A DNA stretch of 64,000 nt. Source: Diplonema japonicum (taxonomy: Eukaryota; Protista; Euglenozoa: Diplonemea). Location: contig OZ025738.1 in the NCBI GenBank assembly GCA_964019335.1, positions 124,001 through 188,000 on the forward strand, in the 5' to 3' direction. Below, one piece after another: positions 4,826 through 35,820 of the stretch; position 1 is the stretch's first letter, and each line of letters begins with the position of its first letter. A model generated the notes under the pieces. That model was not told where the DNA came from. It did no database searches and saw only the letters and a list, made by a program, of their open reading frames with translations. A program made the position numbers and the translations under genes.

Positions 4826-6640
4826 CCTCAAGAGGAGCCTCCCACGTACCAGGAATTAAGCAGAGGTTGCTTCCATGGCCCGTATCAGTCTATCGCCAGA
4901 AAGAATAATGAAAATAACATAACAAAGAGAAGGGGAGAAGAAACGGAAAAAGACGGCTTGGTCATCAGAGAATGTTGACCCAAATGCGTCGGCGGACGCA
5001 GTTTAACGTCATACCCGGGACGGAAACCATGTCGGGAGAGCAGAAGGGAAGTTAAAAGTCAAGAAGTGGAAAAGGAAAAGGCGGAAACTAAAATCATAGG
5101 GTGCGAGGTCTGTGAGACCCTGCATAGCCTATCGCCCTCGTAGCACGCCGGGCCGGCAATCCTACATTGCGTAGGGTCGTCTCCAGTAGTTCCTAGTTGT
5201 AGGAGTTCAGCACAGTCGACCACTGTGACTCGCTGTAGTAGAGGTGCAAGCCCTGGACATGCAGCTGAGGTCAAAGACGGCCTCGCCCTGGGAAAGGAAG
5301 CCCAGGTGTCGAAGCTCATCCAGGTCCTCAGGGCCGTCGACGTCTGCTTCCCTGGTGAGCCTCTTAAGGGCGACAAGTCCAGTGACTCTGGTGTTCGGCC
5401 TCGTCGCGGCGAGATCCCGTTTGGCCGCGGGAAGGGCGGGGCCGTCTTCGGGTTCCGGGCGTTTGTTCCTCTGCCCGTTGTAGGTGAGCAGGAGAGGGGT
5501 CCTCCCTGGAGTCCTAGTCTCGTCACCTCTTGGGGCCTCGGAACCGAAGAGTGGGTGTTTCCAGCCGCCTTGGGCGAAGAACTCCGACCACCACTGTTGC
5601 TGTACCGCGGTGTTCAGCCCCGAGTGCCATTCGTGAGACAACCGAAGACGTTCGGTGGTAGGCAACGCCTTGTGCGCAATCAGAAGAAGCTGTTCCTGGT
5701 TGGCGACGGTTGCCTGTTGGTCGGCAGTTCTATCCGTGTCACGGGCCTCGAGCAGCAGTTGATGTGGAGAGGTGTCCAGGTGCATCGGGAGGGGACCGAC
5801 CGACAGGAGCTGACGCTGGTGTTCGTCCAAGAGCTCCGGGTGTCGCCGGAAGTAGACCAAGAGACTGAGGTATCGATCCATCCGTCTCTGGAGGGCCCTT
5901 CGGTTGAGGGCTTCCTGATCAAAACCCTGTGACTGCTCGCGCAGGATGAGAAGATCCCCATCGCCTGTGGAGGAACTCTTACCACGACGGCTTTCGTGCT
6001 CGTAAGCAGTGCCGTCGTGCTTCTTCTTGCGCGAGGGTCTGTCCGGGGAGTCCTGCGTGAGGTCGATCATTTCTAAACCACCATCCGCCTGGTGAGGGTC
6101 TAGGGGAGCGTCTGCCTCGGCTCGGGCCACGGGCGGCTCCAGGGTCAACGTCGTGTCTCTCTGGGCGTTGACCACCGGTTGAAGCGTCGCGTGTCCCATG
6201 GCGGGAGCCATCGGCGTATCCATCCCGAGTCCGATGTTCTCATGGACGGACGTGATGCAAGGAGTGAGCTGTACCTGGCGGGCGCCGAGGGGGGCGTCTG
6301 CCAGAACGGGCGTTGTCACGGCTCGGGCGAGCGATGACTCCACAGCCGACGTTGTCACAATCTGGGAGCCGACCACTGGTTGGAGTGTCACGTGTCCCAT
6401 GGTAGACGACGGCATCGGTGTGTCACTCCCGTGTAGGTCACTTCGTGTCATCCCGCCATATCTTTCGTTTGTCAGGGCAGCTCTCGCTGGTGCACATTCC
6501 CACAGGGCGTGCTCCGTGACTTCTGTCGTCGTCTGGCATCGATGGTCGCAGACGTCGCACGCAAGAGACGAGCTTTCCACACCCTCACGTTCATCCAATT
6601 GCTTCCCCCACACTCGAGGGTGTACCGTGAACACTGCACC
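4826..6640 (-). mobile_element. 5'-truncated LINE (family D') with C-terminal Zn finger, long tail and structured 3' UTR
   Basis: ORF 5207-6634 has CDVC..EHALWEC and RYLSLLVYFRR. Its 3' region shares two motifs (GCCCTCGTAGC.CGCCGGGCC and GCCTCCCACGT..AGCAGAGG.TGC, + strand) with the TSD-flanked insertions at 24395 and 56440. Confidence 0.65.
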
Positions 6641-28337: not shown

Positions 28338-28846
28338 TGCCAACAAATTATGAGTTATTATTTAACTCGAGTTCCCGAATTTTTTGCACGAGGGCCCGCA
28401 GGGCCCGTGCAAAAAAAACAGTAACGAGAGTTAAATAATGGCTCATTTGGCGGCAAGTAAGTCGTTTTATTTCACTCTTCGTCATTTGAGTCACTCACTC
28501 TCACTGCTTTCACTGCTGTTTCTTTCCACGCAGGTCAGCCTTTTTGGGGATTTTCCTAAGGTAATATGGGGTTGCTATTTCGCCGTGGCATTTAAAGGGG
28601 AAGTAAAGCACTTATTCCCACTTTTAAGGGCTGGAATGGCCTCAGATGGCCAAAAATAGTCAAAATACCCCGCCCCCAAATAAATTTTTCAAGGGGTTGG
28701 GTACATTTCTTTCCACGACAAGATCATTTTTTCACTCTGAAGCCCCATAATTTAACTCCAAAATCTCATAATTTAACTAGTTGCCGTTTCGCGTTAAATT
28801 ATGAGGCCCTTAGTGAGTGAAGAAAATGACGAAGAGTGAAATAAAA
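28338..28846. repeat. nested inverted-repeat element (MITE-like)
   Basis: ~100-bp hairpin at 28350-28446; 23-bp IR TTTTATTTCACTCTTCGTCATTT (28465-28487 and 28824-28846); 13-bp IR hairpin at 28765-28805. Confidence 0.75.
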
Positions 28847-29010
28847 AAAACAAAAAGCATAGAAGTTAGATAGGATTTATTGAACTGTATCTTCAATTGT
28901 GTGAGAATAAAAAAAAAAACCGTCTTCGATGTTGAACAAATGCAAAAAAAAAAAACTCAAAGTACAGGACAAGCCCCCCGCTAGAGGGCCGCCCTATGGG
29001 AGGGGGGGGT

Positions 29011-32000
29011 CTATCTGTTAATACTCCCCTTCTGGAGCATTGCTTTCATTCCGATTGAGGCCGTGAGCGTCTTGCGGAGTCGTGTGATGCGGTCCCGCTT
29101 GTAGTCGGCTTTCAATTCCATTAGCTTGTCGTGCGTGGAGCGGGTGGCGAAAATAGGCCTCCTGGAGAAACCAATAGCTGCCTTTCCTCCAATGGCGATG
29201 AGGGACTTCACTCTTTTTCTCTCGTCCGCTGGGAAGGGGCGTCGCTTCTTCCGTGCCCTGCATGCTGTGTTTATCTTTACGATGAGAGCTTTGATTCTGC
29301 GCGCCCTATCTTCCAGCAGGCCTCCCAAAGACTTTCCGGTCGTCCATTCGAAGTCAATGGCCAGTTCCACCGCCGACACCTCCGAGGTGGTGTCCTTCTC
29401 CACCCAGCGCAGTTGTGACAACCATTGTAGCAGCGGGTTCAGGTACTGGGACAGGACCCCGCTCACTCCTTCGAGCTCGCCAGCTATCGGAACGGGGCAT
29501 TTCTTACCTACCACATTTCGAATCCACGGTAGCGGCTGTGTGTTGACATCCTCCTTCTGCATGAGCTCTACGTCTCGTTTCTCAACCACCACGGCTAAGT
29601 ATCGTTGCAGCTTGTCTAGGTACGCAAAGTCATGTCCTCTCGGCAGAATCGCGTGCAATTCCAGACATTGGGGCCATCCTGTCCTGTTGCGCAGTGGTTC
29701 CAAGCCGTCCTGTGCTAGCTCTTCCTGTGCGCAGGCGCACTCGTAGAGTTGGTGGCGGAGTAGGGTTACCGTGTCCGGGTACGGTGATTCACACAGGTCG
29801 CACCTGAACCCTTGTGTGCGTGATACTGTCGTTGTTGGGACTTGGCTTATGCTCTCTTCGACTTCTTCGGTGCCGTCACCTTCTGGTGCCAGGGGGACGC
29901 TTCTTTGATTCGTTCCTGCATGCGGGCTAAGGTAGGGGACCCGTCTCAGGCAGTAGGACATGAGCGGGTCTTTGGCTGTTTTCCATAGTTGGTTGGTTTT
30001 GGGATCCGCTCCCGCCTCCATCCCTCTCACTGTGTTCCTCTCGCCAGCGACCTGCTCCGGGCTTTCCTCACCGCGTCCCTAAAGACGTGTCCGCGTTCGG
30101 CCCAGGGTTTGTTCCCACAGTCTAGCAATTGCGCCCAGCTCCATCCTATATAGGGGAGCCACCGACAGACCAGGTTGCCTACTGGTCCCATCGGGGTGGA
30201 CCCCGTGCCGTACCCCGCAGCGATCCGCATGCATCTCTGTCGTAGTCGTTCGTCGTCGAGCGCTCCGGACACCACCTTCAGGGAGTGGTATATCACATAG
30301 GAGAGGGGATCGTTTGTGTGCCCCTTCAAGAGGACTGTGTTCACTGCGGTAGGAGAGCGTCCACGGTGGTGAGGGCCCCATAGGTTGCATGTTACCCTTG
30401 TCGACAATTTCTTGAGCGTCTCGTCACATGGGGGGGAGAACGGTCCGCTGTAGAGGCATGACGGAAGAATCGTCGTGCTGACCATGTGTGCTTTCGTCTC
30501 GAAGGCTAACCTCGTGCAACCCAGCCGGTCTAGCGAGTCAAGCGCATTCGCGGTCGGTTTGTTCCATTTCGTCCCTGTCCTGCGCGTGTTGATTTTCACG
30601 CCAAGCCCTTTGAGGTCCGACACCGTCTTGTATGGTACAGGTACTTCCGAGCCTTTCTTCATCGCCGTTCGGTCTCCCACGACTCTCGACTTGAACCCTT
30701 CCGCGGTGCCAAAGCCCACCGTCTTTTCCTCGTTGACCTGCATCTCCGTCAGGTCGCAAAACTCTAGAGTCCCTTCGACCGCTGCCTGCAGTGAGTCCCG
30801 CAGCTTCGCTAACAGATAGGCGTCGTCGGCATATGCTAGCACCTCGGCGTCCGGCGCTACCTGCTCGACGGCCCGTATCATGATGGACAGCAAGGCGTTG
30901 ATGATGATGACCGACAGCGGGCACCCCTGGAGGATTCCGTTTGTGGCCTCAAACGTGTCACCAACTCCTATGGGGTACTTGAACCTCCTCGTGATCTGGG
31001 AGTACATCCCTTGGAGTGCTCTTCCTATAGATTCGTCCATTCCCAGGGCGCTCATGAGGTCAAGGGACAGCTGTTGTGGCACCAGGTCGAAGCACTTTCT
31101 AAAATCCAGGGCCAGTCCCTCCAGCGGCTCCCCATCCACCAAAGCCAGCTCCAGCTTGGTACACAGTTCCATGAGGGCTGTCGTCGTACTGTGCTTGGGC
31201 CTAAACCCGTGCTGTCTCGGCGTGATCCAACGTTCCTGCCAGTCAAGGACACCCTTCAGCCTCGTACTCTTGATCACTTCCCTCAGCTGTTCCGCTGTGA
31301 TCGAAGTACGCGACATTAGGGTTTTCTTGATCATGTTCCCGTAGCGCTGTGCAAATCGTTCGTACTGTGGCTCGTCCTCTGGTGTCCGTGGAGAAAAGAC
31401 GCCCGACCAAGCGATCACCTCGTCCATCTTCCGTAGGTTTGCGGTCACTCCACCATCTGCCGTCTCAACCACATCTGTCCTTTGGTTTGGGTGGTCTTTG
31501 ATCCAGGCTGTGATGTGTCTGCGCTCCTTCCCAAAATCAGAGCGTATTGAACGTTCGTATGCTTTCGCCTGCATGTTCTTGCGGCATAGGAGCAGCTCCG
31601 ACAACATTCCCTGGGAGTAGTCCTCAGCTATTTCAAGCTCCCCCCTGATGCTATCAATACTCCCTGTCGCGTCGATCTTGCAGAACTCGACCTTCAGCTC
31701 TTCCCCTAGCGTCGTTATGTTTCTGAGCGCGTTCCGTATCTCCACCGGGAGCGGCCCGCAGTGTCCACCCTCATAGAGTTTCAACATTTGCTGTTTTGCA
31801 CTTCGAATTTTGAGCTTCAACTTCTCAAGCCGCTGTTGTCGATTTGTTGCCGCCCCGACTGCCGACTCCGTTGACCTCGCACTCAGCTCTGACCTCGTAG
31901 GCTCCCGTACCTTGCCCCTCCCGGTGTATACGTTGCGTACCGGTCCCATGTACCCATGTAGTAGGTATTGTTCCGCAAGGTCTGATATCTCTGAGAAAGC

Positions 32001-33038
32001 TTCGGTTGGCCTCTGTGCTGCAATGAACTCACGGTACCTCGACTTCTGCATCAGTGTCTCCGCTATTCCGACTGGCGCCTTCTTGGTCTTTGGTATCTCC
32101 TGCGGGACGGTGTATCTTAGGACTTCTTGTCGAAAGGCTGGGATGTTGAGTGTTACCGACAGGCATCGGTGGTCCGACCCGGAGATAGCCTCGCTTACTC
32201 CGCAATGCTCGAGCCCCTGGGCCGCGATGTTGTTCAACAGTACCCTATCAACCCGCGTATTGCAATTGGTTCTGACAAGTGTGCTCTCTACCTGTACTCC
32301 ATCCCTCCGAGCACAGAATGCAGCGGCGTCTATCCAGTCCGTCTGTAAAGCCCTCCTTAGTGTGGCGGATCGGGTTTCGTCCGTGTTGAAGTCCCCCACT
32401 ACTGCCACCAGCACGTCTCCCAGCTCGAACTTGAGTCGGTGTAGTAGGTAATGGAGAAGCTCTTCACGGTACTTTGCCTTCGTCGGGTCTTGGCCTGAGT
32501 GGCAGTATACATTCACCAGGTGGAGCCATCGCTTGTTCCCATCAAGTGAGATCTTTACGTGTGACCATCTGTCTTTATGCGGCCCAGTCGTTTCACAGAT
32601 CACCGCTGTCCGTGGTTTCTTCACAAAGGTCCCCAATCCGCCTCGCTTCGCTATCGTCAGAGACGTGACACCTTTGGTCTCCCTCCCTGGTTGTGGTTTG
32701 CTCCAGAATCTGGTGTACTGTCTGCCCCAAACATCATCTCTCAGCACGTGCTCGATCTCCAGCTGCGTCTGTGCCGTGAGGGCAGTTTCTTGGATGCAGA
32801 ACGCGTCCGGGAGGACAGTAGAGTACTCACCCAGCCGGTTGTTCAGTGCTGAGCCGTTGTGTGTGAGAATGGTGAAACTCTCTCGACCTGGTCCGGGGTG
32901 GGGTTCGACACCCTGTTCGATGAGGCGCTCAAACTTCTTGTCAGATAGACGTATCGGGTCGTATTTGGACGGACGGGAATGGGAATGGAGTGGAGGGAGT
33001 GGGTTTGAGGGGTGGGTTTGGGGGGAGTTCTCCTGGAG
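29011..33038 (-). pseudogene. family A ORF2: 2A-like peptide, APE, RT (internally deleted), Zn finger; frameshift at ~30030
   Basis: Open from 33038, right after the ORF1 TGA, to 30027; continues in another frame 30030-29011. The early RT motifs appear missing between VIK and STRLKG. Confidence 0.85.
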
Positions 33039-35199
33039 TCACTGCTCGCATTGCTCGCATCCGCGGCACTTTACCCTCTTGCAGTTCGGTATTATGCAGG
33101 TCTGCGCTGGGTTGCTTTTCGTGATGTTCCCGTCACAGTAGTGGCACACCCCCTTCCAGTTTTGGTACGTCCCGTTGTAGACGTGGCATACGCCCCTGCC
33201 CAGGCAGTCGTTGATGTCGGGGCCCTCGTCCAGGTCGATGTCGGTGTCATCGTCAGTTGGGGGGGGACCCAAGTCATCTTCCGTCTCCATGTCATCGTTT
33301 TCTCCCCCCTCGGCTAGCGAACGGGGCTGGTCTCTGTCCAGTCTCGAGACCGTCGCTTCCGTGAGAGCCTTTATCTGCTCGGTGAGAGCCGTCATCTGGG
33401 CGCGCATCTGCTGGACCTCCCCTCGCAGCTGCGCGTTCTCTCTCCGTAGCTCGACCACTTCCGTTGATGGCTCATCCCTGCTCGGTTCCGCCGCCAGCTT
33501 GCGGATCGCATTTTCAATGGCCGTAAGGCGGTCCTCAACAGCCGGGGTACCTGCCATCCTCGTCGTGGTGGACGTCTTTTCGGACTTCGGAGGGGCGACC
33601 TTTTTCGGGGGGGCAACCTTCTTTTCTGTAGTAGGAGGCTTGTGGCTTGGCTGGGTGGACCCCGTCACTGCACCAAGGTAGGACTTGCCTGTGGCTGCGA
33701 CCCCTGTCTTCGGTCTTCCCCATGACTGTGCAGTTGGTGTCTTCTTAATGGGCGGGCCTCCCACGTCGGGTGCTATCCTGCAGTGGAGAATCTGTCCTGT
33801 CGGGGATGTGATCCTCAGCGTCGTGGTTGGGGGTGTGCCTCCTCGGATGTACCAACACCTCAGGTTGTTGGTCCAGCCCCCGTGTAGAGGAACGGCCTCC
33901 CACTTCATGCTACGGAGTATTAACTCCACGTGCTCTACGCCGCATTGCCCGTACAGGCCCGTCAGTCGCCACCTCGGCTCCCCATGCTGTCCGCGCTGTC
34001 GTTCATCTTCGCCCAACACCTTGTCAAGGAGCGCGGTCTTCTTCTCCTCAGACGTCCTCACACCGAGGCGGCAGTCCGACTCACGAAGTGCTAGCCCCTG
34101 CTTTTCCGCCTCTGCCAGCTCTAGCGCTTCCTTCAATGTGGTCTCCTTCGGGAGCCAGGCGACGGGGGACCTCGGCACGTCCTTCGGCTTGACAAAGACA
34201 CCTCCCCTCCCGGACGTGCCCACGAACCTGTCGAGGCTGGCTCTTGGGATCGTCGCGAGCACGTCTATTCTCGGGGTCGGTCCTTCCATGATCCTGTCGA
34301 TCCTGTGGACCGTCTTGCAGCCTAAGCCCTGGAGGAGCTTTCGGGGTTCGGAGGTCACCTGCTCCCACCTCTGGGTTGAGGTGTGTGTCTTCGAGAAGAC
34401 GATCGCTACACGTGTGAACCTTGCGCCCAGGTCGATGTCCACTGTGTCCTTCGATGCGCACATGGAAATCTTCCCGCTCACTACGAACAAGAACATCTTT
34501 CTGTTGGTGAACTCACCGTCTGCCTTGAGTACGATGTCGTACTCGTGTCGTTCTGTGCCGCGGCGCTTGAGGATGAGCGCCTTGTTCCCGTCCCATCCCA
34601 TCTCCTTGGCCTCTCTTGCGTTTTCTTCGGTTGCGATGGCAACCCCGTCCTTCCCCGCCACCAGCTCTTCCCACGACACGAAGGGCTGGTCAAACTGCCC
34701 CTGCTCCAGCGACCAGCGTTTCGCTGCTTGTGGTACTTTCTGCGGCGGCTTGCTGTTTGGTCCTCTCCAGGATCTCGCCTCACCGTCCGAGATCGGAATG
34801 TCTACTCGCGGCAGTTTGAACTGCTGTACTGCTTTTTTCAGAACGTTTACGTTGAACGGTTCTGACGCGTTGAGATAAGCCCGACCGTCGAAGGCGACGT
34901 GGATGGGTAGCTTTTTGGACTCTCCCGAGATAGGTGAGACTGCGAGGGCGCCGTTATCGACCGTCAACAAGCGGACTGTCCTTCGCGTGCTGGGTGCAGT
35001 AGGTGTCGTAGTTCCCGGTGACGTTTACTTGGTATTCTTCGCTTCCTCGCAACTCTTGTATCATGCGGCGTCTAATGTCGCTTCCCTTCTTCCCTAGCTT
35101 CTCTCCGACCACTCCGTAGAAGGAGTTCCCGTTCCCGTTCCCGTACGCCTTTCTGTGCGCCGTCATCCCGAAGCCCTTCATAGCTTTTAAAATGTCCAT
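33039..35199 (-). pseudogene. family A ORF1 (frameshift/deletion near 34960)
   Basis: 81-aa and 643-aa ORFs in different frames; homologous to ORF 1-1296. Confidence 0.8.
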
Positions 35200-35479
35200 G
35201 GTTGACGTGGACCGCTGATGCTGAAATTGATGCTGTTGATGTGTTGTTTGCGCTCTTCTCTCCTTCCCTTCCTTGTACTAACCTAGAAACCTTTACCCTT
35301 CCTAAACTTATACACTTCCTTTGACCCTACACTTCTGTTTACTTTTATTTCCGTTACACTTTTACACTTCTTCTAAATCTTTATACTCCGTTGAACCTTG
35401 ATGTCGCGTTCTCACTTCCAATATTTGTATTTTCTTTTCAAACCGTTGCTGTGTGAACTTTATCGGCACGGTCGGACAC

Positions 35480-35517
35480 CAATAAAGTACAGAAACTGTA
35501 GCTTTAGAATCGTTGGT
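35480..35517 (-). ncRNA. spliced-leader (mini-exon) sequence, 38 of 39 nt, fused to the LINE 5' UTR
   Basis: ACCAACGATTCTAAAGCTACAGTTTCTGTACTTTATTG carries the kinetoplastid/diplonemid SL 3' half CAGTTTCTGTACT.TATTG and an AACCAACG-type 5' half (diplonemid type, from memory). Confidence 0.92.
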
Positions 35518-35820
35518 AAAAAAAAAAAGAAAAAAAAAGAAGAGAGTGGGGATAAAAGAGATTCCTGTCTCTACTTAAAAGAAAAACTAGAATAGGAGAA
35601 TTATTAAAAAAAATAAAATAAAAATGTATCAGCGCATTTCATCAAAAAGAAGGTTTTTTTCCCACGCAAGAATCTTTTAAAAAAAAAAAGGTATATTATC
35701 AAGGCCCCCCACCCCCCCTTGAGGACCACCTTCTTTATAATATTAATTGCTAAAAAAAAAAAAAAAAGTAGGGATTAGCATCGTTTTTGAGAGTTTTATC
35801 CACCATCCTTTTCAACATTT

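Follow-up and report, generated by a model that had tools for sequence, protein, structure and literature searches.

The host spliced leader as the probable inherited 5′ end of a LINE family in Diplonema japonicum

The window analysed here, that is the whole stretch of 64,000 nucleotides of Diplonema japonicum DNA (contig OZ025738.1, positions 124,001 to 188,000), carries on its minus strand a LINE of 6.56 kb running from position 35517 to position 28956, whose features are collected in Table 1. Both reading frames of the element are damaged: ORF1 by a deletion and a frameshift at a place where sister copies stay open, and ORF2 by a shift of frame near 30030, where some sister copies are open. 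Pfam recognised in ORF2 both an endonuclease (Exo_endo_phos, 3.4e-6) and a reverse transcriptase domain (RVT_1, 2.5e-19), and in a structure comparison the reverse transcriptase (RT) matched the R2 and L1 ORF2p chains. The window copy is a defective member of an APE-type non-LTR retrotransposon family and not an element of the SLACS/CZAR kind, as had been claimed in a preliminary description of this DNA. The only database relatives retrieved by protein search (P0001, P0003) showed 58% identity to ORF2 and 43% to ORF1. As both proteins come from ORFs of one and the same Trinity gene of a EukProt transcriptome, another protist transcribes a related bicistronic LINE.

Table 1. Features of the LINE (window positions) and loci of the host SL RNA genes (contig positions).
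Feature	Position	Strand	Basis or remark
T11 run, directly 5′ of the element	35518..35528	-	half of the probable oligo(T) target (or of its duplication) lying upstream
Spliced-leader (SL) head: exon of the host SL (39 nt), from nt 2 to nt 39	35480..35517	-	identity to the exon of SL RNA genes L011/L029
Hairpin over the SL/GT junction	35454..35491	-	find_repeats arms and MFE folds of sister heads
Module of 78 nt that follows the SL (element nt 39-116)	35402..35479	-	about 90-94% identity between subfamilies
5′ UTR, 280 nt	35200..35479	-	ATG at +280/281 in sister copies
ORF1, coiled-coil, Cys-rich C-terminus; broken here	33039..35199	-	stop at 34954-34956 after deletion/frameshift
ORF2, main part	30027..32747	-	Pfam: APE about 32169-32654, RT about 30708-31259
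ORF2, C-terminal part, in another frame in the window copy	29011..30030	-	continuous in some sister copies
3′ UTR, 55 nt, ending ...CCTGTACTTTGAG, without poly(A)	28956..29010	-	same end in 28/28 sister loci where found
T12 run, directly 3′ of the element	28944..28955	-	half of the probable oligo(T) target lying downstream, or copy of a U tail
SL RNA genes	C4:650075, C15:779065, C15:779417, C51:59128, C59:512400, C59:512746		upstream region

The first 38 nt of the element, which directly follow the T11 run, match nucleotides 2-39 of the host SL exon at 100% and miss only its first A, so that the earlier claim of a LINE beginning with 38 of the 39 SL nucleotides behind eleven Ts was confirmed. 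A 19-mer of the SL had this single match in the window and none in 100 shuffles. The head is followed by GTGTCCGACC... (hence a GTGTCC start) and leads to the ATG of ORF1 at +280 (35199). The arrangement of Sm site and T-terminator typical of an SL RNA gene was absent downstream of the SL in the window LINE, in agreement with what had been noticed before, and the whole 6.56-kb element contains no run of five or more T, of which only 0.7 would be expected at its T content of 16%, a number too low for the lack of such runs to speak for transcription terminated at T runs.

To place this head among the SL sequences of the host, 62.5 Mb in 132 contigs were scanned, in an assembly that is near chromosome-level and from which haplotigs had been purged (PMC13598402). 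Six SL RNA gene loci were found. All share a conserved upstream stretch, an exon of 39 nt and an intron starting GTACCC, as well as an Sm-like site, the terminal hairpin and, about 100 nt past the exon, a T run; in two of them, L011 and L029, the exon stands directly before the GTACCCAATC intron (GTACCC...). Four of the genes form two pairs, on C15 and C59, with members about 350 bp apart, and a 5S rRNA gene adjoins the locus L029. The upstream motif occurs six times in the genome, with a GTACCC intron at 6/6, and none of the six genes is interrupted by an insertion. The 38-mer of the window is the host SL, as it is identical to the exon of these genes; a published 39-nt euglenozoan SL differs from it at two positions (PMC3795323). 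The preliminary description had named two findings that would speak against it, namely a host leader different from the 38-mer and an SL gene intron starting GTGTCCGACC; the leader is the same, and the intron of all six genes starts GTACCC. Comparison with the true genes, which had also been proposed, showed an intron and an upstream region unlike the flanks of the LINE. An SL gene interrupted by a LINE is thus largely refuted, the real intron being GTACCC and the genes' own upstream region being absent at the LINE heads.

SL sequence is far more abundant in the genome than its genes. The 3′ half of the SL occurs 232 times, and 258 matches were counted for a 13-nt SL core preceded by a purine at −7; the GTACCC intron follows the core at 8 of the 200 places listed. 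About 250 SL copies lie on repeats against six recognisable SL RNA genes, a ratio of about 40:1. The heads are carried by several repeat families: SL/GTGTCC, to which the window LINE belongs, a sister family with SL/GTATCGACC, families with SL/GTCGTTCGTG, SL/GTCGTCTGTG and SL/GTGGTGGGGATAAC, others, and singletons. For the window-LINE family we sampled 41 loci, namely every one of the 39 exact GTGTCCGACCGTGCC sites together with additional hits found by BLAST. The flanks differ at all 41 and the junction ...TATTG/GTGTCC is present at every one: 24 loci have a full SL, 14 a truncated SL (only SL nt ~25-39, after a T run), two an SL plus a relic, and one an alternative junction. No AG acceptor precedes GTGTCC at any of the 41, no SL-less copy that could act as a master was found among the 39 exact and 26 BLAST hits, and no copy of the family lies behind the SL-gene upstream region. 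The SL/GTGTCC junction gave 0 matches in a metagenome scan.

Several SL-bearing repeats show peculiarities of their own. The related families SL/GTCGTTCGTG (about 50 of the 200 listed places) and SL/GTCGTCTGTG (about 25) are clustered near contig ends, no further than about 10 kb away, their body facing the end and their SL proximal (e.g., L005, L008-L010, L012, L018, L021, L022, L024); some copies are chained or chimeric, and one set recurs every ~10.66 kb on C24 (C24:7163-39098). The ends of contigs C5, C63, C2 and C11 (L012:1-300, L037:1-300 and the last 300 nt of L005 and L024) carry (CCCGCAAA)n arrays of an 8-mer, which read 5′ to 3′ towards the end at left and right contig ends alike, so that the C-rich strand runs to the 3′ terminus, a polarity opposite to that of canonical telomeres. 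In L024 such an array is fused directly to a truncated SL (...CTTTAT/CCCGCAAA). Moreover, at least 14 repeat copies read GTTTTTA followed by CTGTACTTTATTG and GCAGGTTGTTTT (e.g., C1:657305, C9:67591 and C15:164506), and represent yet another family holding the 13-nt SL 3′ core, without the SL 5′ half.

A first look at the 3′ end of the LINE gave 426 candidates genome-wide, and the 40 that were scored are 98-100% identical, which points to a very young family. At 28/28 sister loci where the 3′ end was found, it reads ...TTTGAG and is followed by T4-T43, poly(A) being absent. T runs were observed on both sides of full and truncated copies, and the length of the duplication is unreadable within the homopolymer. 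In 21 sister copies truncated at their 5′ end, the truncation points are spread over element nt 5063 to 6325; a T run directly adjoins 17 of these copies and lies within 2-7 nt of three others. Since T runs flank randomly truncated copies too, they are most likely the insertion target and not a splice signal, and the family would thus choose oligo(T) tracts for its insertions, the T strand carrying its sense strand. Insertion would begin with a nick of the bottom strand in the A tract and with priming by U residues at the 3′ end of the RNA, plausibly read from the T run downstream of the parent copy. A search for empty sites found none, the 3′ flank entering another high-copy repeat.

Two further features lie at or near this end of the element. 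A short repeat of about 220 nt starts about 88 nt past the 3′ flank (window 28640-28856); a first look across the genome gave 555 candidates for it, with identities of 86-93%, among them a tandem set with 2.5-kb spacing on C63. The last bases of the element (CCTGTACTTTGAG; window 28956-28975, minus strand) have the 9-mer CTGTACTTT in common with the 3′ half of the SL (35480-35493, minus strand); one sister subfamily has CCTCCACTTTGAG in its place, and the sharing may be due to chance.

The alignment of 5′ ends, which the preliminary description had suggested together with a search for T tracts and AG acceptors, found the SL at all 41 loci, while the T tract is most likely a target and no AG acceptor stood before GTGTCC at any of them. 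Of 25 full heads, 16 start at A2, three at A1 and four at C3. Twelve of the 25, in every subfamily, have an extra CC before the head, which is essentially absent from the 21 random 5′ truncations, and in L014 the head shows three AACC units. The sequence CC+(A)ACCAACG is consistent with slippage at the cDNA end on an AACC/AAC repeat. A useful comparison is offered by L004:1481-1700 (C2:150556...), a retrocopy of unspliced SL RNA that comprises the exon from A2 and about 85 nt of intron, fused to unrelated sequence and sitting behind an A-rich/T flank; it is a U6-L1-like template-switch chimera, and as such serves as a control for the 5′-end signature. The presence of the CC signature at full heads and not at truncations suggests that the template RNA ends at SL nt 1 and that the RT usually stops one nucleotide short. 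The earlier proposal that loss of the first A reflects an RT stop near the cap is in keeping with these starts at A2, in L004 as in the LINE, and may be right.

The conservation of the head extends beyond the leader. The SL and the next 78 nt are about 90-94% identical across subfamilies that share only 75-80% identity in their ORF1 DNA and are unalignable over the rest of the 5′ UTR; within this head the SL itself is identical in all subfamilies, and the following 78 nt differ by 6-10%. Since the same SL/GTGTCC junction occurs in diverged subfamilies, it predates their split. In two subfamilies (L057-L071), which share GTCAATAGGTAATACGG after the arm described below, the heads begin at SL nt ~25-27, directly after the T run, in 14/15 copies, and the sole full-headed copy shows 0.0% divergence over 600 nt from the truncated ones. 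L054 and L056 are internally deleted, SINE-like derivatives of about 0.9-1.3 kb that retain the SL head, the ORF1 start and the 3′ end.

The module can also pair with the leader. The 3′ end of the SL plus one G (35479-35488) pairs with an anti-SL arm, CCGATAAAGT (35457-35466), across a 12-nt loop, so that the hairpin covers the SL/GT junction; on the window head find_repeats gave arms of 13 nt, 85% complementary, with 12 nt between. The arm reads CCAATAAAGT in sister copies, the window copy having a G.U change, and the hairpin is present in the MFE folds of most sister heads. The exact 10-nt anti-SL match in the 280-nt UTR of sister copies was equalled in 32 of 2000 shuffles. Arm changes in young copies are A-to-G and retain G.U pairing, and no double compensatory changes were seen in these copies. 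The 138-nt head as a whole folds no more stably than shuffles (z −0.09), the local hairpin alone standing out. Rfam gave nothing credible on the head and the 3′ UTR, with no HDV-like ribozyme (none at E<=10) and no SL RNA family.

The preliminary description had proposed that the RNA of the element acquires its leader by trans-splicing and is then copied back into DNA. For the window copy this found no support as a routine, given the 0/41 acceptors and the missing SL-less master, but in some variants the traces are clear. L042 reads SL, TTTCTGTACTTTATTG, GTGTCC, and L053 reads SL, CTACAG...TATTG, GTGTCC; their relics, of 16 or 22 nt, begin exactly after two AGs within the old SL. In L041 the SL is joined after CACTCAG of the 5′ UTR of its subfamily, and in two copies of the sister family (C37:577806 and C69:310248) after ACCAG. 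Since in these variants the SL directly follows a parental AG, trans-splicing followed by reverse transcription does occur, and transcripts running through SL-headed copies are probably sometimes trans-spliced at ordinary AG acceptors before being turned into DNA again. Those junctions that lie within the UTR could alternatively stem from cis-splicing, with the G/GT of the head as donor. Doubles of SL and relic are found in 2/41 copies and make up about 3% of heads; being distinct and rare, re-trans-spliced products are not the main source of new copies.

Taken together, the invariant junction without acceptor, the lack of a master, be it SL-less or driven by a promoter, and the fact that the junction is older than the subfamily splits argue that the element now inherits its SL, which the preliminary description had offered as its alternative and which turned out to fit better. 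We consider it probable that trans-splicing led to a single capture of the SL, which has since become a heritable 5′ module and is maintained along with a complementary anti-SL hairpin. We infer both the single ancient capture and the manner in which the RNA 5′ end is produced. An ancestor of the family would have gained the leader when its trans-spliced RNA was reverse-transcribed almost to the cap; from then on the SL would have been passed on with the element, full-length template RNAs carrying a genome-encoded leader that is kept letter-perfect together with the downstream arm, which would pair with its 3′ end over the SL/GU junction. An element RNA ending in the SL would presumably be treated as a normal mRNA, i.e., capped, exported and translated, with no need for trans-splicing. 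Its 5′ end might arise from an internal promoter starting at SL +1, which is our preferred guess, or from processing of read-through RNA. A bolder version, which we put forward tentatively and which is perhaps rather doubtful, sees in the LINE an oversized mimic of an SL RNA gene: a promoter in the SL and 78-nt module would start at its own SL, so that the RNA would be born with a leader, and possibly with the hypermodified cap, without trans-splicing; the hairpin would block the SL/GU donor, and transcription would stop within the T run downstream, leaving the RNA with a U tail able to anneal to the A strand of the next oligo(T) target.

An inherited head is not free of difficulties. A perfect SL beside a drift of 6-10% in the next 78 nt needs strong selection or periodic refreshment from the host SL pool, and, as most copies are without A1, a gradual 5′ erosion would be predicted, which is not seen unless the few A1-bearing copies are the sources. 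Truncated heads predominate (14/15) in two subfamilies despite a full-headed copy with 0.0% divergence. Finally, SL heads stand on unrelated families, which trans-splicing of read-through RNA would explain economically. This last point, together with the pristine SL of all young copies, the variant junctions placed exactly after parental AGs (the five variant copies listed above) and the heads starting at A2 as in the retrocopy L004, would be accounted for if the leader were added anew in each cycle, that is if one or a few SL-less masters with AG/GTGTCC, lying in polycistrons, were trans-spliced and reverse-transcribed, and the SL-headed copies were dead on arrival. We regard this as unlikely, because no SL-less copy appeared among the 39 exact and 26 BLAST matches in a near chromosome-level assembly, and because each of at least five diverged subfamilies would require a hidden master of its own; the purged haplotigs (PMC13598402) leave room for a master present in a single haplotype.

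The letter-perfect SL of diverged subfamilies could also be explained if an inherited leader were refreshed. Read-through from the upstream T run, used as a polypyrimidine tract, would undergo trans-splicing at the CAG inside the old SL, and the resulting direct repeat would collapse during reverse transcription; or the RT would switch by homology to an SL-bearing RNA, and in either case a perfect single SL would be regenerated. SL plus relic copies are found in the window-LINE family and in other families, and a T run followed by the first AGs is the textbook arrangement of a kinetoplastid-type acceptor, which the heads resemble; the chimeras L004 and L024 show template switching by the RTs of this genome. 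On the other hand, doubles are so rare that a 16-nt repeat would need to collapse with great efficiency, and the CC slippage signature indicates a template ending at the start of the SL, a point that holds equally for trans-spliced RNA. All in all, we judge regular refreshment to be quite improbable. Still further from our preferred account, and in our opinion very improbable indeed, is a descent of the head from an SL gene, either hit by a LINE or copied as unspliced SL RNA that was fused by template switching and then diverged. SL/GT does resemble the exon/intron boundary of the gene, the anti-SL arm recalls a TTTATTG...CAATAAA pairing that is possible in the real SL RNA, and L004 is an example of unspliced SL RNA retro-fused to other sequence. 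Yet the introns differ (GTACCC in the gene, GTGTCC in the LINE), the similarity of the 105 nt after the SL to the SL RNA intron is not above that of shuffles (z about −0.7), the upstream region is found at six loci, each of them an ordinary SL gene, the T-rich flank differs from one LINE head to the next, and the Sm-site/terminator arrangement is absent.

An inherited SL head has partial parallels in known systems. In the literature searched, no published description of an SL-headed LINE in Euglenozoa was found: SL relics were reported only for dinoflagellate retrogenes, and for Euglenozoa Pr77 and SLACS-type elements; the D. japonicum genome note mentions neither the SL nor repeats (PMC13598402). 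The relics of DinoSL in dinoflagellate retrogenes, described as 'mRNA recycling' (PMC5585692, PMC6050394, PMC12014239), are likewise DNA-encoded leaders at the 5′ end of retro-copied sequence, and their stacked, truncated forms start after an AG within the old leader, as they do here in L042, L053, L017 and L026. However, DinoSL tags host retrogenes and is re-added in each round via an acceptor, whereas here autonomous LINE families share an invariant, acceptor-less junction and, unlike DinoSL relics, a hairpin arm complementary to the SL. Of the traits of a dinoflagellate-type relic, a source locus with AG/GTGTCC was missing among the 39 exact and 26 BLAST hits for the canonical junction, only the variants L041, L042 and L053 having their SL joined at an AG acceptor, and poly(A) was absent at the 28 sister loci with a 3′ end.

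The ingi/L1Tc, RIME, NARTc, DIRE and SIDER elements of trypanosomatids carry the Pr77 hallmark (L1TcRz), and in L1Tc Pr77 is an internal Pol II promoter, bound by the SL-gene factors TBP and SNAP50, that sets the RNA's 5′ end (PMC1874656, PMC4748587, PMC3185411, PMC8190864). As in the present case, these are euglenozoan APE-type LINEs with the first ~80-120 nt conserved among diverged elements. They are without an SL, which heads the window LINE, and their transcripts are unspliced; they end in poly(A), in contrast with the oligo(T) flank found here. Moreover, the CGTG downstream promoter element of Pr77 lies at +25 to +28 (PMC4748587), whereas in the window LINE CGTG occupies +49-52 as counted from the SL start (+10-13 past the SL), and the HDV-like ribozyme of Pr77/L1TcRz elements has no counterpart in its head by Rfam. 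On these two grounds, the mismatched CGTG and the missing ribozyme, we rejected the assignment to the Pr77-hallmark elements.

The SLACS, CZAR and CRE elements use a restriction-like endonuclease and occupy a fixed exon position within SL RNA genes. They too are euglenozoan non-LTR elements physically linked to SL sequence, but the window LINE has an APE, belongs to a family scattered over T tracts and has the SL for its own 5′ end (all but nt 1 in the window copy). Membership in this group was likewise rejected, given the APE, the T-run flanks at 41 loci and the 0/6 interrupted SL genes. A last parallel is given by the SINEs and L1 chimeras with heads from small RNAs, such as tRNA, 7SL, 5S and U6-L1 (PMC7245038), in which, as probably here, a 5′ head derived from a host small RNA is inherited with the retroposon. 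Those heads give a Pol III promoter to non-autonomous elements; here the 39-nt SL exon heads an autonomous LINE, and its promoter role is putative.

The abundance of these heads has consequences for work on the host, in that the ~250 repeat-borne SL copies are a concern for the annotation of SL genes and for the mapping of SL reads in diplonemids. At the same time, SL-headed copies are a DNA record of the trans-splicing acceptors that were used and of RT stops at the capped end. To our knowledge, each mRNA of Euglenozoa needs the SL and its special cap for translation, and how the autonomous retrotransposons of this group meet that requirement is a long-standing question. If our reading is true, a LINE with a built-in, letter-perfect host leader and an arm that pairs with it would be a new solution to the 5′-end problem of LINEs, and the SL-headed LINE lineage would be a natural reporter of SL function.
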